Assembly (NCBI GenBank): GCA_964247055.1
Contig: OZ176053.1
Coordinates: 10,602,001-10,666,000 of the forward strand
Length of the DNA stretch: 64,000 nt
Direction of reading: 5' to 3'
Origin: Paragordius varius
Taxonomy: Eukaryota > Animalia > Nematomorpha
This document shows positions 20,926 through 58,521 of this stretch, one piece after another; positions within the stretch are counted from its first letter, which is position 1, and each line of letters starts with the position of its first letter. The notes beneath the pieces were generated by a model, which was not told where the DNA came from, searched no databases, and was given only the letters and a program-made list of their open reading frames with translations. A program made the position numbers and the translations under genes.

Positions 20926-23900
20926 TCATAAAAACATTTTGTAAGGATTCATTATTTGGTATGGATCAAACAATTGCTTAATTTGTTTACAAAGGTGCCA
21001 ATAATTTAATGACTTATGGTTAATGTTGGTAATGTAATCTTTTTTGCAAAGACCAATACCATGTTCAGCACTGAGACTCCCTTCCCCAATCATTTGATAT
21101 ATGTATGGTTGGAGAGCGTCTAATACATCTTGATCGAATAGTTTAGTTGTGACATTTAAATGTAAATTACCATCTCCAAAATGACCATATGAAACTATGC
21201 GTTTAATTTTGTTACCTACAAATATAATTAGGATTGATCATATAATATGACTAAATTTTATCTATAATTTAGTAATTAACCAAATGATTTTGATATATAC
21301 ATGAGTATTTTTGCCGGTTACATATAAAATATGGCTAGAACCAGCCAAACATATAACTATTAAGATAATAATAAACGGCTTTTATTAAATCTAAAAAAAG
21401 ACGTCGGAAAGATAAGAATATTTAATATAATTGAAAATAAATACATTTATCACTATTAAAACTTGTTTAGACAATTATTGATATTTTATTCTACCATCTT
21501 TTCCAACAAATCAAAATTGTTTGATATATATATATCAAAGTTATCCTTAAAAAATTAAATTCACCATAAAAAAACCTTGATTTTGGGTTAATATAATTTA
21601 TTATTAATATGAAATATTTATGGAAAACACTGGATTTATTTTAGGATTAATTTGAATTGTCAAGGTAAATTTGAATTCAGGGTGAATTCGATATGCAAAT
21701 GGTATATATTATAATTGATCAATTTTTTAACCCATTTTTTCGGTCAAATGTTGACGAACTTCTTTCACAAAAGGTAAAATTCGTCCTGACGAAACAGATA
21801 TATCGTATTTATAGACGTAACCGTCTTTTAATAAAGATGCAGTAATTGATTCTCGTAACTTCCAAAGCGCGCTCATTTGTTCAAGAGATTGTGAAATGAT
21901 TATATCTACGAAAGCAAAATTGGAATGAAATATACAGAATTATGGAGGGCAAAAATTTACAATATCTAGATAGATCCTATAGTGGCGCAACCCCACATTA
22001 TATAGAAAAATAGAAATGAAATATAATATTAGATCAGAAGTGTCCAACACATGGCCCTTCAAAATATTTCTGCAGGCCGAGAGAAATTTCAAATACATAA
22101 TTTTACGAAATCCAAGTAAAAATGATTTCCGCAAATAAATTTCTGTGAAAATCTTTCCGAATTTTGGCAATAAACTAGCAAAAAATCTTAAAATAAATAG
22201 TAGTTAGATTTTACGTTCAAAATTTAATAAAATATTTGTAAATGCCCATATATTTAGCGAATACGGCCCTTTGTTTTCTTAATGCAAAAATGCGGCCCGC
22301 AAAGCTATATTTGTTGGACACCCCTGTTTTAGATCCTAACTTAAATATAAGCATATCTCAGCTTATTTAGATATCGGTTTAAAACATCTTCATTACCTAT
22401 CTTAACACTTTAAATTTGCGCCTTTTAATTTAGTAATCTCATGAATGATTACTCTTTCGTTGATTTCTAACCCAAAATAGACAGATTTTAGTTTTACCCT
22501 TACTCAATCATGATCACATAAATACTCTTATGTTAAACGGTCAAAAAACCAAGTGTTCATGTATTGTTCTCACAAAATATATTTTTATTGATTAAACCGT
22601 TTCTAGCCATTACAAATTTTAGATTTGATGTAAAATCTAAAATATCGTAATTATTTAATGAATATAATAAAAAAAACTTTTTTGTGATATGGCTAATGGT
22701 AAAAGTTGTAACCCATACTCTTGCAATATTTCGGTTACATTCCTATTGCCTGAAGCCTCGATTAAACAGTAAACTTGAAACATTTCTCCATTATTTTCTA
22801 ATTTTAATACAGAAAAATTAAAAAATTTACAAAATAATTGATAATTAATATTTATATTTTTTTTATCTTTCATCTATATGTATATAAATATTAGTGTGTT
22901 AAAAGGAAAAATTAAGAAACCTTGATTTAACAATTGTTTTGGCAAAGCATAACCCAAATTCTCTTGTACTGATAACAATGCATCTAATAAAAAAAATTTA
23001 TTAAAGACTTTTTAATACAAATATCATAAATATTATGCTGCATGATAAAAATATATTGCATTATTGAATATTGAGGTATTTTGAGTGAGCACGGAATGAC
23101 AATTTGAAAATAATATATAAATATATTTAGAAAAAAGGCTAAAATCTATTTGCTTAACTAAAAATTTGAGGTATAAATTTCACATCTATAATTCATAAAA
23201 TCCCAAATTAATCAGCCTTTACACTCATATATTGGCCGATCCAAATATTTTATACGGATTCATGATTCCATTTGGATCTATCATTCGTTTCAAGGAACAC
23301 AAAAGGTTCCATTTGGGTGTAGGCCGTGATTTAACATTTTTCGCCTGACTATCCTTTCCCTTTTCGGGAGTTTCCCTACCATTTACATTTCCAGCAGCAG
23401 GGGAATCATCGAAATAAGAAAAACTGTTTTCATCTGTGTTGCTGATCGACGACGAAGGTGGACAATAGATATGATTTAGCGCATGAAATTTTTGTAAACC
23501 TACCCCATGTTCAGCGCTAATACTGTAAGCTGAAACGGTGGAGTCTTTAAAAGGATGTATGACAGTTGCAATATTCAAATTTTTACTTTGCCCATAATTA
23601 TAAATTTTATTTTCTAAATTATGCAACAAGTGATTGGGTGATGATAATGATGATCCTGCATCCAAACGCTCTCGTAACATGTTTGATGTTGTGGACATGA
23701 TATTAAGGTGCATATTTTGATCTCCAAAGTGGCCACATACTGCAATCTTGACATTTTGGTCCGCTATATTATCTAGTCCATTGGAGTAAAAAATAAAATT
23801 AGGCAGACGAAAAGAAAAAATTTAAAGACAAATTATTTTTTAAAAGACAACGGACGATACTATACTTACTAAGCGTGGTATCCATTTACATCTCCATTGG

Positions 23901-26900
23901 TTTTTTTACGGCCAACGATAAATTTTAAAAATTAAGGTTTAAAAATGTGTTACCTAGCATCTCTCTTTTAATTTCTACGTTTTGGTTATATAGTTTCAAT
24001 TTTAACAGTAAATATTCTAGAGATAAATTTTAAGCATATGAGAACAAAATTAAAAATTAAGCAAGCAAATTATAAAAATATTAAGAAAACCTCTGTTGAC
24101 AATTTCCACCATATCAGCTATGTAATTTTTCCAATGAGTAATAGGGATAGAAACGTCATAACTCACTAAAAATTGATCTTGTCTGAGATCGTTTTCATAT
24201 TTAAGCGATTTTTTTGTCTCACTTGCGATTTCCTTGTTGGGAGTTTTTTGTCTAAAACTTTCCGAAAGGGCTGGATAAATGTGTTCCCTCAATTTCCATA
24301 TATCATAGTATTGAGTAGTATTTTTAGCTAATGTACCCTCAAAACTAACTTTATCATTATTCACATTGTTAGTTACCATATCATAGAGTTTTGTGCCATA
24401 CAGCATTAAATTCTCCGTGCTAATACTGGTGGATTCACTTTCAATATTCTTGTCGTCAGGCATCAATTTTTTGTTTCTATAAGTCCCAGACTCGACCAAA
24501 AAGTAATATGGGTACATATTTTTAAATGGATATTGATCCTTAAAGGATGAAATGACCGTTTCGATACAAGCTTTTGTAAAAATGCAAAGTATAATTATAA
24601 AGGAATAACGCCAAGGATTTATTAGTTAAATTTATTTAATTGGAATGCATGGACCAAGGCCTGTAACAAGGAGAATATTAAAATAAAATTTATAAAGTAT
24701 TTTGAGACTGTGGTTTTAAAGGTTAAAGTTTAGGCGTATTAAAATATATTTCTTTAAATAAAAAATATATTTATTTCACGAATATTTCATGTAACTAATT
24801 TGAGTCAAGAACAAACCTAAATTAACACAAATCAAATGTTTTTACATGTTATATATTAATAATATATGGATGTTCAAATTTTATAGAACCGTATAGATTA
24901 AAAAGGATATTTTGTGTTAGCCTTCCAACAAATAAAAGGCCAAAACGGTAAAATTAACATTTAAATAACCGAATACAATTCTCAGAATTTGTAATGCGAA
25001 TGAAATAATTTGTTTGTTAAATGTGTACAACAGTTAATGAAAAATTACCTTAATATATTAGTCGTATAAATTATTATTGTTAAGAAATAATTACATCCAG
25101 ATTTCCATTGAAACCTCTGATTTAAATTATTTAAATTTCATCAAAACAGGACACGAAATTTCATTTATTTAGTTTTAAGAAAAAAATCACTACCTTTATC
25201 CATAAACTCAAAAGCAGATAATGTTTCACCCAAGACTTGACGAGCTAATTTATAGGCTTCGATAATTTGTTGAAAATCGGAACATCCTATTTGTGGGAAA
25301 ATATATTTTATTTAGGAGATGTGTATAAAAAAATATTGTAAATATACCAAATAAGGCCACATTCACATCTTTTGGTCGTATAGGACACAATAAACTAATT
25401 TTGGTTATAACGCCCAATGTTCCTTCAGAACCTGTAAATTTAAAATAATAAAATTTGTGATAACTAGATGTATTATTTTTCATCGATTCGTCAAATTATT
25501 CAAAAAGTACCGATAAAGACTTGTTTCAAATCATATCCGGTATTGTCTTTTCGTACAGTGTTTAACATGTTACAAATTTCTCCGTTGGGTAAAACCTAGT
25601 CAAAAAAGAGTAGTACCCCCAATAAAACGACTTTTTTTTCAATTAAAAATAATGGAAATTTTATATAAAAAAGATATAAAATAGAGAACTTATAAAGATA
25701 CCAATATTTTTAAATGATTTAAGAGCCTATTGCAATGAGTAGCGAAAAAAGGAATAGAGATATTAGTATATCACACTAATAACTTTGTTTGTGTGAAAAA
25801 TATTAAGGATAATCTTTTCATACGTTTTCACAATATTTTTTACTCTATATTCATTCAAATAATCTGATATTTATATATTACCACTTCTAATCCTAAAACT
25901 GAGCCCCTCAAAGATCCATAACGAATAAGTCGAACGCCCCCGGCATTGGTTGCGACATTCCCGCCTATTTGACAACTGCCTTTGGAGCCCAAATCGAGAG
26001 GTACAATAAGCCCGTGAGCAGATACTGTTTCATCCAAGGTTTTTTGAACACAGCCTGCTTCACAAATAACTACACCTGAGAGTGGAAAATAAAATGAATT
26101 AAAACATTTGTATTATTTCAATAGGAATAGATTAATTCAGGGCTGTCCAATTTGGAAAAATTCGACGGACCGCATAGATTAAGTATATGAGCCGTTATAA
26201 AAATTTTATTACATTTCAAGCATAAAAACTGTCATTAATAAGAAAGCTATTCATTTCACCGATTTATTTATGGGTTTGTTGCTAATCGGATATGGAAATT
26301 TGCTTATGAAACATCCATTTTACTAATATTTGTGAGCATATTTTTGCACAATGTGCAATGCGTATCAATTTGATAATTTTGGAAAATTTTGCGGATCGCA
26401 CTTTATATCTCTCGGAGGATCGCATGCAGCCCGCTGGTCGTATGCTGGCCTCTTGGTTAATCAGTCGTTGCATATAAATATATTTTTTCCCTTTATCTAT
26501 TTGTTATTCTAATCCTCCACAAAACTGGATAATTGAAATATTTGTAATATTTCATATTAACTTTTTGTTTGATTAATTACACTAGTCGACAAATTTGGAC
26601 ATTTTTGAGCACCACCACTCAAACTTTTAAATTATGACTAATTTCAGTGTTTTTAAACCGAATGTGAAAATTTTTTGATCCCGCCAATCAGAATTTTGAA
26701 ATATTATAGGTTTTTCTATTTTTCAAAAACAAGAGAAAATCGAGAGAAAATTAAATATAACTTTATAATAAAATGTTTTTATATAATAAACTTAATATCA
26801 TTTATTAAAGCGTTTTAAACTCTATCTTTGAATATAAATATGCCATTTAAATATAAGAGAGAAAAAAATAGTACGGACTTAAACGTCAAAATTTAGTCTT

Positions 26901-29900
26901 TTTCTTTCAAGTGAATTTTTAATACGTATAAAAATTTTTTAAAAAAATACTAAAAAAGGCATTCTATGGTTTAAACCTTCGGCTTTCAGATAGGCTATAT
27001 TTTTTTTGTTAGTTTTCGTTCTTTCACTTATTAGGCTTTTTTTCTTGAGTTGGTTCTTACAAAAAATTCTTTATTTATACCTAGTGAATATACTTTATTT
27101 TTTAAAATTATTGGTTGTTTTGTATTTTTAATTTCAGATGGATGTTGTGTAGCCACTTTTAGTAGAATTTACTATTATGGGATTAAACCATTTGTATTTA
27201 CCTAATCTTTTTATTCAATTTAATTGTAGAATTTATCTAACTTTATTCTGTGAATTGGTTAATTTGACATGTCAATTTGCCTGGATTTTGCTTGCAAGTC
27301 TCTCTTATCGGGCTTTACGATTACTTATTGTTATCTTTGCCATATCCGGCATAATTGGATCGCTTAGGGGATATGAAGAGCTTGTGCAGCCGCCCGAATC
27401 TATCACACTATACATAAGCCCCTTTTATATTTTTAATACTTTGGCCCTTAGCTTGTTTAGTATCTTATTTAATGCCTAGAATTTTGTTATTCATGCATGG
27501 AATATTACATGTATCGACTTGTTCGTTTGAATATTTTAACATATGTACACGAGGAATGATTGTTATTTTTAAATTAAATACAAATTTAAAAATTAAATTT
27601 CGGAAAAATCCTATTGGTGGCTTCAATTTTCTTTTTTGTTTTGGCCTTTCCATGCCAATAGGTATCAGAAAATTCAAAAATAATGGGGTGGTGCAAAACC
27701 TTGTTGAGGAGTGTTATTATCAAATCGTTACGGCTTTACAATATTTTTGACAGAAAAAAGTGATCAAAAAGGCGTTATAAAAATATTTGTTGAGAGGTGA
27801 GAGTTAAATAAAATTCAACAATTGAAAAACGACTCAAAGTTAAATGTATTGATTCCATTTTCAGAGATAAAATTCATTAAAATGGCCAATATATATTTTA
27901 CCACACCTATATTTAAAAAGTAAACAATTTTAAAGGTTAATATCAAAACAATACTTATATTTTTTCATATATCATAACATATTAATTAACACTTGTGGAC
28001 TTTCAATTACTTTTTTGATATATAGATACTTTTGTAAAAATTCATTTCATTAAGGTTAAACGTTAAGTATTTTGGCCTTAACAACAATTAATAAATTAGA
28101 TTACGAAATGTTTTTATATTTCAAGGTTATAAAGGACATTAAATTCAAATGTAAGCTAAAATAACTATGTGAATCAAATAAAAGCGCTATATTCAAAAAC
28201 AATAGTTTCCTATGTCGATTAAATTAGCTCTCAAATCTAAATTAAATTTTTGGCATAGAATCTTGATTCAAAAGTTATATAGCACAGACTAAATCAAGAG
28301 ATAAAAAAGATATTTTAATAATATTAGTAGTGTAGTACATATAAAATTATATATATATTAAAAAAAACTATAATAATAATAATAATAAAAGGTTTCAAAA
28401 AGAGCAATTATAGATGGTAGAATGGTTATGGGGGCAGACTTGTCACTATACTTGTTAATATATCAAAGATCAAACCCTTAATTTGCCCATTTTTCTAATA
28501 AATGTCCGTCCTAAGAAAGATATTAAATCTTTCAAATGCTTTTAAAAAAATTTCCCTTTATATATAAAGTAAATATAATTTTTGTATTCACATATATATC
28601 ACTAACTTTATTAAGTATAAGTTAGTAGTTAAGCTTTATATTTTGACAAAGGCTGATATACAAACCTATGTTTAAAAAAAAGTTTGTTAATTGAATTAAT
28701 TATGTGACTCAAAATTCTTATAGAGCTAGTTGTGATTTCGCTATACATGTTTATTAAGCGATACCTGAAAGTTGATCGATAGAAAGAACTTTATTCATGC
28801 TAGACATTGAGAGGATAATTTCATCAAATACTGGAATGCTCCCATGGACTAATCCTGTATTACCACCCTATGATAAAATAAAAATTATAAATGGGATGCC
28901 CGATAAAAGAAGCAAAAGCTTGTTAGACAGTTTATAAATACAATCATTTACAGTCACAATCAGTCGATTGATGCTAAAAATGCAATATAATTAAAGTTTA
29001 TGGTGTTATCTACATAAGGCAAATTTAAATAGTGACCAAAATTTTTAAGGCCAGCCTTGGTAAGGTCAGAACTGGTCTGACCCTAGAACCCTGGTTTCCA
29101 AAATGGGGCGTAGAAAAATTTAAAGGGGCTAAAAATTTGGAGAAAAAACCATAAATTTATATGCTTAGAGTTAACTTAATAGATTTATCGTTTGATGTAA
29201 ACAGGGGCGCAAGAATTTTTTTCAATATGGTGTGGGGTGAAAAAAAGGTAGGAACCCTTGCCATAGAAGTAATCAATAAAAATTTTATAAACCTGTGGTA
29301 CAATGGCTAATTTTCTGTCATTACAATAGGAAACAATTTTAGATACCTCTTGAACAGTTTTAGGTCTTAAAACTAATCTGCTTGATCCTATTTATAAATA
29401 TATAATAATAAATTATTAGAAAAATAAATGATTAGCTTTGAAATTTGAAAAGAATACGGCATACATAACAGTACGCTGGATATTATATTCAAAAAAGATT
29501 TTATAATTTGTAGTAAACAGAAAATATATATACCGAAAAGATATTATATAGGTATTCATTCTTATCAAAAATATAATTATGGAAAAAATAAAAATTTTTG
29601 CGAAAACATTGCATTTTAAAAATAATCTTAGAAATTTGAAACATTTCATTAAAATTAAATCTTTTAGAAAAATATTTTATGCTGAATAAAAAAATTACAA
29701 CATACCTTTGCATTCTTGCAACCAATCCACGTTATAGGCATCAAGCAACGATTGATCTGTAATAACTTGTGAAGGAGTTAGAAAGCTATTAAAATAATTT
29801 ATATCCTCGGTTTTTAGATTTGCAAACCATCCTCTTTTAATATCATTATATTTAAGATATGTCGGTTGTGGATGTAAAAATCTTTTTAAAATTTTGAACA

Positions 29901-29901
29901 T
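20926..29901 (-). CDS. D2HGDH: D-2-hydroxyglutarate dehydrogenase, canonical isoform B (~498 aa); shared exons 29901-29706, 29387-29293, 28867-28765, 26075-25882, 25595-25511, 25431-25348, 25286-25194, then 22983-22921, 22797-22678, 21905-21732, 21215-20926
   Basis: FAD domain: [98 protein letters not shown]-terminal half: [59 protein letters not shown]. All introns GT-AG and in phase. Confidence 0.92.
22035..22326. mobile_element. hAT (Charlie-type) MITE in a D2HGDH isoform-B intron
   Basis: Ends cagaagtgtccaaca / tgttggacacccctg; 8-bp flanks tattagat / ttttagat (7/8 identical); internal gcggcccg motif. Confidence 0.75.
23225..24570 (-). CDS. D2HGDH: D2HGDH alternative C-terminal cassette A (exons 24570-24091 and 23772-23225); with exons 1-7 gives a ~625-aa divergent isoform
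   Basis: Acceptor at 24571 is in phase with the exon 7 donor (DK|ACIETV). Open frame contains [51 protein letters not shown] and [11 protein letters not shown], with its own TGA at 23225. Confidence 0.85.
26138..26456. mobile_element. Degenerate hAT-type MITE
   Basis: Starts cagggctgtccaa and has gcggatcgc/gcagcccgc motifs near the right end. Right TIR and TSD are degraded. Confidence 0.4.
26580..27713 (-). mobile_element. Non-autonomous Chapaev3-like (CMC superfamily) element in D2HGDH intron 3
   Basis: Termini CACTAGTCGACAA / CACTCCTCAACAA (inverted, 10/13); TTA 3-bp TSD on both sides (26577-79, 27714-16). Both ends are homologous to the ends of the element at 49150-50746. Confidence 0.8.
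29089..29260. mobile_element. hAT (Charlie-type) MITE in D2HGDH intron 2
   Basis: Ends ccctggtttccaaa / aaaaaggtaggaacccttg; 8-bp flanks ccctagaa / ccatagaa (7/8). Confidence 0.65.
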
Positions 29902-34507: not shown

Positions 34508-37500
34508 TTACCATTTACGATGTTTTTCTGTATTATTTGTGTTGGTATGAAAACTATTTGTGGTTGAATCAAATGTGTTTTGTGGTTTTCTACCCTTTGG
34601 GATGGTAAAAATTTTCATTTTGTTTGAATTTTGTTCACCTGTTTGTGGTGTTTCTGTTAAGCTTCTTTCATAGTCTGTCAATGAATTTGGGTCAGTGTTA
34701 TTATCTGTCATCTCACTTTTAGTGTTGTCGTGTTTTTTGGTACCAATAAAAGTTTCATTATCAGCATAAATACCTGAACTTTTGGATGAAAGCGTTTTGT
34801 AGATAGACATGGCCTACAGGTAAAAGAAATTTTTTTATTCTTTGTTGCAACAAAACTTTTATCATTATATTTGACATTCAAAAAAAGAAATTGGGCACAT
34901 ATAAAAGTCATAAAAGATTAGGCCCTATATAATAAAATTTTTTTTTGAATATATGAATATATTAACGACAAATTAACATAATTTGTTAAATGGTATATGG
35001 AGAAAAATATTTTTTACGTAAAATACCTGAGCTACCATGTTAGAAATGTCGCCAGTTTGGGCAGGTAAGATGAGAGTGTTACTGCTTTTTGCCAGGTTTC
35101 CAAATTGATTAACATACTGTTCTGCTATGGCAAATGAAGCAGCATGTTTTCCCTCCTATTATTATTCGTTTTCATTGTAAAAAAGGATTTTATTAACAAT
35201 GTATTAATAAAAAAATGTATGATAAAAAATATACTAATAAATATAGTGAAACAAAATTTATATACACATATGTATATTGCGTTCATGATCAAAAATTATA
35301 AGAGCTATAAAGCTCAAATTTATTAAAAATATCCGAATTGAGTGGTTAAATTTTAGAATCAAATACTGTTAAAATTTACACCAGTAATTTCTTAAAATAA
35401 TACAAAACAAACTGTTTAAAAATAATTAAGTTTGTGTCTCAATACTATATAACATTTAAAAATGTAAAAATCTTTCAGTAAACCCTTAAAGGAAATGGAT
35501 TAATCAAAAAGAAAGATTTACAAATATCAAATCTTTTTTGATAAGTTTTAAAATATATTTGATATAAAGCATTCAAAAAGTGGTCAGATTAAAAATTAGC
35601 AAAAAACGCATGTATTGTACATAAATAATTAGTGAAATTTATTTTTTTAAACCTTTTAAATTTTAGATACTTAAACTCCTTAATAATTTATCTAATGCAT
35701 AATTTAAACATGTGAATTAGCCTATATTAAAAAACATACATAACTTTTACAAGAACCAGGGTTTTTATTCTTACCCCTCTTTAAAAAAAAATTGAAAATG
35801 TATAAAATAGTTTATATCCGGTTTCCACAATAAAACCTTTTTTAACATCCTTTAGCAAAAAGAATTGATAATTTGGACCAATATATATGGAAAAACTCAT
35901 CCACAAATGACAAAAAATTATAAGGTAATCATTTTATAGAATTAATCATATCTTTTACATCACAAATATTATTGTATTCATATTTATAAAAAATAAAAAT
36001 TTTAATATATCTAATATATAATTAAGCGATCCTATGCATATTTTTTCAATTATTTTGGATAAAGATATTAGAAAAGTTTTTAAGTTTAAAAAATAACAAT
36101 TCCATTTTAAATTTTATTTGGAAGTACAAAGTATAGCATTATGCAGTCCGAAAAATTTAGAAATCCATGATTTGCAAACATATGATCAAAAAATCAATGA
36201 AAATGATTATTCTCAAACAATTTTAGTCGCTATGTTTAGATTTTAGAGTCTTATGCTAGATCCATAAATGCCCACATGTGCGAATTATGTACATATTTCT
36301 GCACAGAATTTTTTTTTCGCTGGAATGAGAGAGTGGTACCAATTGCACGTCAAGAAAATGCCAGAATGCAGAAAAAAATTATATTAAATAGTATACCAGA
36401 ATAAAACGTTCATAGAAATTGGGCAATCCCCAAAACGATCTTTACTCAGTTTTATTGGTAGGAGTCGCACATTAGGTAATGGCGTCAATTTTATTTTGTA
36501 CAGGACGAATTCCGTGTTTCGATAGCTCAAAACCTAGGAATTTAATATTGTCTGATAAAGTTTCAGTTTATCTTTTCTTAACGTAAAACCGAATTTTTGC
36601 AACCTTGCTAGGGTCTCGTTAGGTTTTTATCATATTCATCTTTTGTATAACCAACAATCAATTCTTTGATGGAAAACATATCTCATATTATCCCGACATT
36701 CGACACGATCGCGTCTAAATGTGCGGGATCCACACGGTTCTCGTCCATTGATTTGAGGGACGCTTACCTTCGAATTCCGGTGGATGAGGAGAGCAAAAAA
36801 TATTTGGTAATTACTGCCCCGATGGAATATTTCCAATTTAATCACCTACCATTTCGATTGAAGGTATCCCCCATGCTTTTCCAGAGAATAATGGATGAGT
36901 TACTTAAAGATTGTATGGGCACAATGGCCTACCTCGACAATGTATTGATTGTGGTAATACAAAAGATGAACATGATAGAAACCTTAACGAGACCCTAACA
37001 AGGTTACAAAAATTCGGGTTTACGTTAAGAAAAGATAAATTGAAACTGTATCAGGAGAATATTAAATTCCTGGGTTTTGAGTTATCAAAACAAGGAATTC
37101 GGCCTGTACAAGATAAAATCGACGCCATTACGAAATGTGCGACACCTACCATAGTCGATAAATATACCGATAAACTTCCAAACTTCGACCTCCAAATGGC
37201 CATATTCTAACTTTTAAAAAAATCCAGTTTTGGCCATATATTTTACAAACTGTGAGTATATTTTTTTTACATGAAAAGTTATAATTGAGACCTATACATT
37301 TAAGAATACCAAGTGCGTTTGTGATATCGTCGCTTTTAATTATTTTTTCGACATGATTTTAATAAATGAGTCAAGAGAACTTCGATTATCGCTTGCACTT
37401 GAAGCTTATAATATTAAGATTCACCTATCTGGTTCCTAAAAATATTATTTTTTTCCATCAACAAGCTTTCGCATTTCATCCATGTATCATCTATATATAC

Positions 37501-57384: not shown

Positions 57385-58521
57385 ATGTCAAATCCTATTT
57401 GGATTTTTACTTGTTTTTACCTTACAATAATTATTATATGGAAAAAATTGGTGGTTGGACAAGAAGTTTTTTCTTACCACACATGCGTGCAAAGCTGGTC
57501 TAAAAAGTTCCCCGCTTGTGTCGATAGGCCTAAACTCGTGTATCCCTTCAATCGGACTCACATTGGTTGGAATGTAAGTCAACCCCTATACTATAGCCTA
57601 CAATCCCCAATAGACATTCGAACATCCGATGTAATCAAAGACACTGACGTAGCAAGAGAACACACTCTTTACCTGAGAAATTATGAGTTATCTGGACCAA
57701 ACACTGGACATCAATGGATAATTGAAAAAAGTACTACTACATTCTTCCTTAAAGTAGAAGGTATACTGCCATTCATAGAAATCCCGGAACCATATGAATT
57801 TATACAGGCTCATTTTCATTGGGGTCCGGGGGGTGGAACTCTCGTAGGATCAGAACATTCGATCGATGGCAAATTTTTCGCAGCCGAACTTCATCTTGTC
57901 CATAGGAGTCGACTCAAAGCCAATAAATTTGCTATTATTGCTGTGTTATTGGAGGTTTTAAAAACCGGTGGAAAAGGTAATATACACGCAAACGAACATA
58001 TTGGACTTAAGTATATAACAGATGCCTTATTAGCCGAACAAATCATGGGAATCAACCAATCACTTTACCTTAAAACGGGAGGAAATCCGATTATCCCAAT
58101 AAATGGAATTGGTGACAAAAAAACTAATCTTAATAATAATTCTAGTACAAATCAATTCACATTAAAGTCTCTATTACCACATGATTGGCAAACCTTTTAC
58201 CGTTATAGCGGTTCGTTAACGACTCCACCATGTATTCAAGAACAAACGTGGTTTGTTATTAAAGAACCTGTGTATATATCACAACATCAATTGGATATTA
58301 TAAATAATGTTAGACAATGTAACTCACAAACTAGACAATGTATGGCAAAAGCTTATGTGGGACCCAATAGGAGACCAACCCAATCTTTGAATGGGAGGCC
58401 GGTTTTTTTTGTTACTAGTACTAATCATGGAAACTTATTAAAACCTTTCTTAGCGGCTTATATTGTGATTCAACTAAAATTTTATTTTCTTTATATACTT
58501 TCTTCCATTTTATATGTGTAA
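57385..58521 (+). CDS. Alpha-carbonic anhydrase, secreted/membrane-anchored type, intronless, 378 aa
   Basis: Single ORF with a hydrophobic N-terminus; QSPIDI, NTGHQ, QAHFHWG (two Zn His), GSEHS, ELHLVH (third Zn His), YRYSGSLTTPPC, NRRPTQ; hydrophobic C-terminal tail. Confidence 0.95.
   Translation: MSNPIWIFTCFYLTIIIIWKKLVVGQEVFSYHTCVQSWSKKFPACVDRPKLVYPFNRTHIGWNVSQPLYYSLQSPIDIRTSDVIKDTDVAREHTLYLRNYELSGPNTGHQWIIEKSTTTFFLKVEGILPFIEIPEPYEFIQAHFHWGPGGGTLVGSEHSIDGKFFAAELHLVHRSRLKANKFAIIAVLLEVLKTGGKGNIHANEHIGLKYITDALLAEQIMGINQSLYLKTGGNPIIPINGIGDKKTNLNNNSSTNQFTLKSLLPHDWQTFYRYSGSLTTPPCIQEQTWFVIKEPVYISQHQLDIINNVRQCNSQTRQCMAKAYVGPNRRPTQSLNGRPVFFVTSTNHGNLLKPFLAAYIVIQLKFYFLYILSSILYV

Follow-up and report, generated by a model that had tools for sequence, protein, structure and literature searches.

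How many enzymes can one flavoprotein gene specify when its 3' half is present twice, and would the two resulting forms act on the same substrate? This question is raised by a 64,000-nucleotide stretch of the hairworm Paragordius varius (contig OZ176053.1, positions 10,602,001 to 10,666,000), referred to here as the 64-kb window. The window is AT-rich (GC content about 27%) and carries on its minus strand, from 29901 to 20926, a gene of the D-2-hydroxyglutarate dehydrogenase (D2HGDH) type. Seven exons encode a single half that binds flavin adenine dinucleotide (FAD). Two exon clusters, cassette A and cassette B, lie in tandem downstream of exon 7, each with a phase-1 start and its own stop codon. 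We read the locus, with a probability of roughly 60%, as one D2HGDH-derived gene in which a shared FAD half is combined with either of two alternative 3' halves, that of cassette A having a pocket rebuilt for another D-2-hydroxy acid. From the sequence we infer that both forms would be transcribed, that isoform A would be catalytically active and that its substrate would differ from that of the canonical enzyme.

The pocket residues are central to this reading. They were numbered after a phmmer alignment to human D2HGDH (PDB 6LPN; the chain number plus 46 gives the human number) and placed with a MAFFT alignment including 141 family fragments, combined with codon mapping. Cassette A retains Arg386 (codon 24289-24287), His434 (23731-23729), His441 (23710-23708), Asn443 (23704-23702), Glu475 (23512-23510) and His476 (23509-23507), as well as the Glu311 equivalent in its first exon, A1. 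Three other positions are exchanged, namely Thr390 for Tyr (24277-24275), Lys401 for Ser (24163-24161) and Tyr432 for Cys (23737-23735), and there is no compensating basic residue near the lost Lys401. Cassette B is canonical at Arg386, Thr390, Lys401, Tyr432, His434, His441, Asn443, Glu475 and His476. A sequence-only reading of the window had proposed these retentions and exchanges in cassette A, and the presence of Thr, Lys and Tyr in cassette B, using human numbering and a span of 23225-24570 for cassette A. The splice model agrees exactly with that span, the 6LPN offset reproduces its numbers at all nine positions, and alignment and codon mapping confirm the residues in both cassettes; the alignment could have placed Thr, Lys and Tyr at the three exchanged positions of cassette A, but did not.

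In human D2HGDH, Lys401 forms a salt bridge to the C5-carboxylate of D-2-hydroxyglutarate (D-2-HG), Thr390, Tyr432 and Asn443 hydrogen-bond to the same group, and mutation of Lys401 abolishes activity (PMC7801405). The supposed contact of Thr390, Lys401 and Tyr432 with the distal carboxylate, which the earlier reading had also named, is thus found in the literature. Among D2HGDH orthologues, Lys401 and Asn443 show strict conservation and Thr390 and Tyr432 high conservation, while Arg386, His434, His441, Glu475 and His476 are invariant across D2HGDH, D-lactate dehydrogenase (D-LDH) and GlcD (PMC7801405). The latter set, subsite A, is complete in cassette A. Of the two D2HGDH hallmarks, cassette B has both Lys401 and Asn443, whereas cassette A has Ser and Asn at these positions; Thr390 and Tyr432 are Tyr and Cys in cassette A. 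Overall, the gene has the same two-domain VAO/PCMH architecture as the human enzyme (6LPN; PMC7801405). Cassette B resembles that enzyme at all nine pocket positions. Cassette A shares with it Glu311, Arg386, His434, His441, Glu475, His476, Asn443 and the NPYK C-terminus, but differs in the replacement of three of the four C5-carboxylate binders and in about 125 extra inserted residues, mostly within predicted loops.

As cassette A retains its full set of metal-binding and catalytic residues, isoform A could plausibly be catalytic. In the mechanism that we propose, the Zn/Mn ligands (His434, His441 and Glu475) and the residues binding the C1-carboxylate and C2-hydroxyl (Arg386 and His476), together with Glu311, would function in cassette A as they do in the canonical enzyme, and the chemistry would be unchanged, a hydride passing from a D-2-hydroxy acid to FAD. 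Subsite B, in which the Lys401 salt bridge is gone, would consist of Tyr, Ser, Cys and Asn, which are residues 382, 420, 456 and 467 of isoform A, and would no longer hold a distal carboxylate. The replacement of Lys401 by Ser, uncompensated by any neighbouring basic side chain, is most naturally read as a change of substrate, and with the sole basic binder of the distal carboxylate lost, D-2-HG and D-malate are unlikely to be good substrates. Isoform A would instead accept monocarboxylic (neutral) D-2-hydroxy acids, with D-lactate as the simplest candidate; a monocarboxylic D-2-hydroxy acid is our best guess for its substrate. The view of the sequence-only reading that isoform A is a D-2-hydroxy-acid dehydrogenase with a different substrate is thereby supported, in so far as all sequence-level tests that were run agree with it.

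A comparison with D-LDHs points in the same direction. In D-LDH and GlcD, a large hydrophobic residue occupies position 390 and small residues occupy 401 and 432 (PMC7801405). The hydrophobic subsite B of mouse LDHD is formed by Val101, Trp351, Ser365 and Ile407 (PMC10589216); in the hairworm gene, the counterpart of Val101 belongs to the shared FAD half. Trp351 sits four residues past the Arg, as Thr390 does in D2HGDH. Mouse LDHD (8JDE; PMC10589216) is thus similar to cassette A in having an aromatic residue at 390 (Trp351 versus Tyr) and a serine, Ser365, that corresponds to Ser401, but differs in having Ile407 where cassette A has the Asn443 equivalent. Similarly, the D-lactate dehydrogenase of Porcellio dilatatus (9QGZ/9QIT) carries its Tyr in an identical YPAL motif, and, when aligned to the Gordionus protein introduced below, shows Thr, Ala and Leu at 401, 432 and 443, respectively. 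Subsite A is identical to that of cassette A in both enzymes. Cassette A therefore agrees with the D-LDH pocket pattern at three of four positions, whereas the fourth is polar (Asn, or Thr in Gordionus) rather than Ile or Leu. Since this position is polar in both hairworms, the pocket is expected to be uncharged and partly polar, unlike the hydrophobic pocket of LDHD. The LDHDs also belong to another lineage than cassette A, whose ancestry is of the D2HGDH type.

Relatives of cassette A are scarce. An exhaustive phmmer search with A2, its second exon, against 1.84 billion representatives returned 21 weak matches (best 41.8 bits), all of which are generic fragments except for a protein from the hairworm Gordionus sp. 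m RMFG-2023; a word-based protein search with A2 gave no matches. This Gordionus protein (CAK9292721.1, hereafter P0005) is unnamed, comprises 226 amino acids (aa), carries PF02913 and represents an A-type cassette. It contains the motifs DIWKLRENIYPAL, FISYDVSLP and SCCGHFGD and all catalytic residues including the complete subsite A, and it has Thr at 443, so that the Lys401/Asn443 pair reads Ser/Thr. It shares 36% identity with cassette A of the window over 212 aligned positions, from which it differs in lacking the long insertions, in its Thr443 and in being annotated as a stand-alone fragment. The Tyr/Ser/Cys triad occurs in two of the 141 family fragments, cassette A and P0005; neither Tyr at 390 nor Cys at 432 is found in any of the other 139. 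A further search with P0005 among proteins of up to 395 aa revealed no additional A-type sequence, the next best match having 36% identity and 64 bits. A carbonic anhydrase encoded in the same window is 37-42% identical to its best four Gordionus matches, and the 36% identity of the A-type cassettes is therefore ordinary for these two lineages. The derived triad, together with the catalytic set, appears to have survived a deep split among hairworms. P0005 starts with a Met followed by EAVVNTF..., which aligns to ...FEFMDK|ACIETVI in the window. This Met may correspond to the one in the FEFM strand, in which case the annotated Gordionus protein would be a truncated version of a longer one, or the cassette would begin further upstream than it does in the window.

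The exons of the gene are listed in the table below. The assembled shared part (seven exons) encodes 283 aa, including the GGNTG motif. The introns of the assembled models are of the GT-AG type, and the complete coding sequences contain no internal stops. The predicted lengths are 625 aa for isoform A and, depending on which of two acceptors is used, 500 or 477 aa for isoform B. The basic N-terminus encoded by exon 1 looks like a mitochondrial presequence. The donor of exon 7 would serve both cassettes: splicing to A1 would yield isoform A, and skipping of cassette A with splicing to cassette B would yield a canonical D2HGDH. A2 matches PF02913 (FAD-oxidase_C) with 48.6 bits against a cut-off of 21.2, and the third exon of cassette B matches human D2HGDH in phmmer with an E-value of 4.8e-21. 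For the first exon of cassette B, the donor at 22678 is the only one that preserves the frame; an alternative donor, TATGG|GT, breaks it and was rejected. The intron between A1 and A2 has the same phase as that between the second and third exons of cassette B, and in the alignment the two are only a few residues apart. We propose that the two clusters are ancient tandem duplicates, each providing a full substrate-binding domain as well as a C-terminal tail. Within the 64-kb window, no second FAD-binding half or further copy was found. The introns of the cassettes also contain high-copy repeats (21445-21633, 22012-22389 and 23713-23901), at which the contig depth in sequencing runs X1 and X2 is approximately 10 to 150x the local background, and many non-canonical joints in 22071-22225 stem from such repeats.

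Exons of the D2HGDH-type gene in the 64-kb window of Paragordius varius (positions in the window)
Feature	Position	Strand	Remarks
Shared exon 1	29706..29901	-	ATG at 29901, GT donor, open frame, phase-1 end
Shared exon 2	29293..29387	-	FAD-binding domain
Shared exon 3	28765..28867	-	GGNTG motif, FAD-binding domain
Shared exon 4	25882..26075	-	PF01565 FAD_binding_4, 54.3 bits, E 1.5e-14
Shared exon 5	25511..25595	-	followed by a 79-nt intron
Shared exon 6	25348..25431	-	followed by a 61-nt intron
Shared exon 7	25194..25286	-	ends ...FEFMDK, phase 1, donor GTAGTG
Cassette A exon 1 (A1)	24091..24570	-	160 codons, acceptor ...ACAAAAG; E311-equivalent, R386, Y390, S401
Cassette A exon 2 (A2)	23225..23772	-	TGA stop at 23227-23225; C432, H434, H441, N443, E475-H476, NPYK C-terminus
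Cassette B exon 1	22678..22866	-	acceptor 22866 or 22797; donor A|GTTTTT at 22678; E311-equivalent in CLIEASG
Cassette B exon 2	21732..21905	-	canonical R386, T390, K401 (YVYKYD)
Cassette B exon 3, with stop	20926..21215	-	canonical Y432, H434, H441, N443, E475, H476, NPYK

An indirect record of splicing comes from variant contigs in public sequencing runs. In runs X1, X2 and X3, such contigs lack intron 5 (79 nt) and intron 6 (61 nt), and in X2 and X3 they also lack intron 7 (623 nt), so that exon 7 is joined to A1. The missing introns 6 and 7 end exactly at the GT..AG sites of the model. The joint at intron 5 has the right length but is 2 nt off, giving GT..CG on the plus strand, and lies beside mismatches at 25518 and 25520. 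The variant copy spans 24570-26075, i.e., exons 4 to 7 and the start of A1, with joints at 25194|24570, 25348|25286 and 25511|25431. Its contigs are a few per cent diverged from the window, have a depth of 1-2x that of neighbouring contigs in the three runs, and contain deletions of 2 nt at 25249, 3 nt at 25389 and 1 nt at 25995. Most simply, the variant would have arisen from an isoform-A mRNA as a processed (retro-)copy located elsewhere in the genome, and as such it would be a fossil record of splicing from exon 7 to A1. The deletions of 2 nt and 1 nt suggest a processed pseudogene rather than an intact retrogene. A reverse transcriptase fragment in the window (36666-36998, plus strand; PF00078, 54.5 bits), the remnant of a retroelement, fits a genome that produces processed copies. 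In the intron following A1, the segment 24053-24085 is present in X1 and X2 only in a variant form, with six substitutions and small indels over about 30 nt, but is identical to the window in X3, a sign that the locus is highly polymorphic or a mosaic of haplotypes. Finally, run X9 (24 M letters), from another sample of the same 2024 study, contains 28% of the sampled sequence words from A1, the intron and A2; its size suggests a transcriptome.

Several observations weigh against the reading of the locus as a gene with two functional ends. Compared to Gordionus, cassette A contains five insertions of 31, 24, 6, 14 and 49 residues (about 125 extra residues), the first two being located in A1 and the 49-residue loop insertion in A2. 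The three largest coincide with predicted loops on the AlphaFold2 model of P0005, but the two smaller ones align within a predicted helix of that model, where the alignment is uncertain. The possibility that the 24-residue insertion, which precedes the Ser401 strand, is a small intron was examined and rejected, as the sole GT..AG pair tried (76 nt) breaks the frame. The P0005 model has a mean predicted local distance difference test score (pLDDT) of 70 and a predicted template modelling (TM) score of 0.69. In favour of the reading, its Foldseek matches (3PM9, 9QIT, 6LPN and 8JDE) belong to the expected family, at a TM-score of about 0.4, a value that is this low because half a protein was modelled without its FAD domain. 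The model of A2 alone is poor (pLDDT 48); the 49-residue insertion is a coil in it. Exon A1 alone is detected neither by Pfam nor by phmmer, and the placement of Tyr390 and Ser401 therefore depends on motifs such as LVSYDVSIP and on the homologue from Gordionus, in which these motifs recur and which can be aligned to 6LPN in this region. At the level of the pocket, position 443 stays polar in cassette A where LDHD and GlcD have a hydrophobic residue. Mutants of human Tyr432 could not be expressed (PMC7801405), and the Cys at 432 could affect stability. The Gordionus protein may belong not to a cassette but to a paralogous gene of its own. Lastly, no RNA run was found to contain the locus; runs X1 to X3, which do contain it, are DNA-like, with introns covered at exon depth, and among the joints listed for the contigs of these runs none connects exon 7 to cassette B.

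Some of these observations would also suit a different role for isoform A, namely that it is translated and folded without being a dehydrogenase for a new substrate. It might dimerise with isoform B, having low activity or a regulatory function, or might still act weakly on D-2-HG or D-malate. The long insertions, the very long A-type branch in the family tree and the failure of profile methods to detect A1 are all in line with this, as is the retention of Asn443. Moreover, the human enzyme already shows moderate activity on D-lactate without any change to its pocket (PMC7801405). Nonetheless, all nine metal, catalytic and Glu311 positions as well as the Tyr/Ser/Cys triad are kept in both hairworms, which diverged deeply. 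This conservation argues against a non-catalytic role, for which such residues would be dispensable. Residual use of D-2-HG is difficult to reconcile with the loss of this activity in the human Lys401 mutant (PMC7801405). We consider such a role unlikely.

A second alternative is that only one cassette is used. Cassette B might be an untranscribed relic beyond the poly(A) site of cassette A, or isoform A might be a rare by-product and cassette B the working end, and no regulated pair of isozymes would exist in either case. The junction between exon 7 and A1 is indeed the only cassette junction among the joints listed, all from DNA-like contigs, and the gap between the stop codon of cassette A and the acceptor of cassette B is short (approximately 360-430 nt). 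Yet in both cassettes the frames are open, the GT-AG sites are compatible in phase and no functional residue is missing. With stop-free stretches having a median of 9 codons, an unused copy would be expected to decay. The A type is common to Paragordius and Gordionus, which dates the duplication to before these two hairworm lineages separated, and there is no other FAD-binding half in the window that could serve cassette B. It is therefore improbable that one of the two cassettes is idle.

The coding signal of cassette A bears on a third alternative, according to which the cassette is a decaying partial duplicate made up of pseudo-exons and its residue changes are the result of neutral drift. 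The stop-free stretches that contain A1 and A2 are 191 and 198 codons long, rank third and second of 8749 such stretches in the six frames of the window, and have a chance expectation of 2-4e-4. The GC content of the cassette A exons is 33-37%, compared to 21-25% in the flanking introns; it reaches 41% in the largest insertion. The variants listed for public contigs at this locus comprise 16 synonymous and 11 non-synonymous changes. The two listed at the Arg386 codon leave the amino acid unchanged, and the same holds for the Val and Gly codons that flank the Cys of VCGH. Within A2, the indels of the variant copy preserve the frame (+3, and -2 and -1 four bases apart). Cassettes A and B are approximately 24% identical over their alignable part, with 47% gaps, from which it follows that the duplication is old and that the reading frame has been maintained. 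Low identity and abundant gaps would also be expected of debris, as would low-complexity insertions and a single close relative among 1.84 billion representatives. However, two long open frames, exon-level GC that extends into the insertions, in-frame indels, conservation of the triad and catalytic set in Gordionus and a recorded spliced junction between exon 7 and A1 largely refute decay, which we regard as very improbable. Cassette A looks like selected coding sequence.

The ancestry of cassette A was assessed in a family tree calculated with FastTree, in which it forms a clade with P0005 (support 0.986). This pair is located at the base of a 29-member group together with all 27 NPYK-type sequences, cassette B included; the support for the A type within this D2HGDH-type group is modest (0.71), and its branch is long. 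The C-terminal motif is NPYK in all 27 D2HGDH-type sequences and NPGK in 90 others, and cassette A has NPYK. Among PDB sequences, A2 matches in phmmer only human D2HGDH. Judged by its sequence, cassette A is a D2HGDH derivative and not a captured LDHD sequence. Capture by exon shuffling from an LDHD/GlcD-type gene, which the D-LDH-like Tyr/Ser/small pattern and the YPAL motif might suggest, deserves hardly any credence in view of the retained Asn443 and NPYK (not NPGK) C-terminus, the position in the tree, the single PDB match and the shared phase and near-identical aligned position of the intron in both cassettes.

Taking the reading of one D2HGDH-derived gene with two alternative 3' halves a step further, hairworms may obtain two mitochondrial flavoenzymes from one gene, a canonical one and a lineage-specific neutral-acid form whose pocket has converged on that of D-LDHs. 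The arrangement would be old enough to occur in two deeply diverged hairworm lineages and may substitute for a separate LDHD gene. We put this forward tentatively. A known parallel for the gene architecture is vertebrate UGT1A, where a common cofactor-binding part is combined with alternative substrate-binding exons from one gene. Variation in UGT1A resides in alternative first exons, each driven by its own promoter, whereas in the hairworm gene it resides in a pair of alternative exon clusters at the 3' end, and the product is a flavoenzyme. No description of a D2HGDH with alternative C-terminal halves came up in a literature search.

If the reading holds, the locus would represent a natural experiment in enzyme evolution, in which one FAD half is combined with two substrate domains. 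Cassettes A and B would differ exactly where structural work separates D2HGDH from D-LDH specificity, and they would offer a direct test case for a specificity switch of three residues. It would also be an unusual route by which an animal gains a metabolic activity, as a terminal exon cluster rather than a whole gene would have been duplicated and put to alternative use. This may bear on the detoxification of D-lactate or other D-2-hydroxy acids in gene-poor parasites such as hairworms. For genome annotation, loci of this type are easily split into a gene and an orphan fragment, as has apparently happened in Gordionus.

The carbonic anhydrase used above for comparison is encoded by the longest open reading frame in the window (57385-58521, plus strand), which is intronless and specifies 378 aa (PF00194, 150 bits). 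One of its Gordionus relatives is located on the same 93.7-Mb chromosome as the A-type protein.

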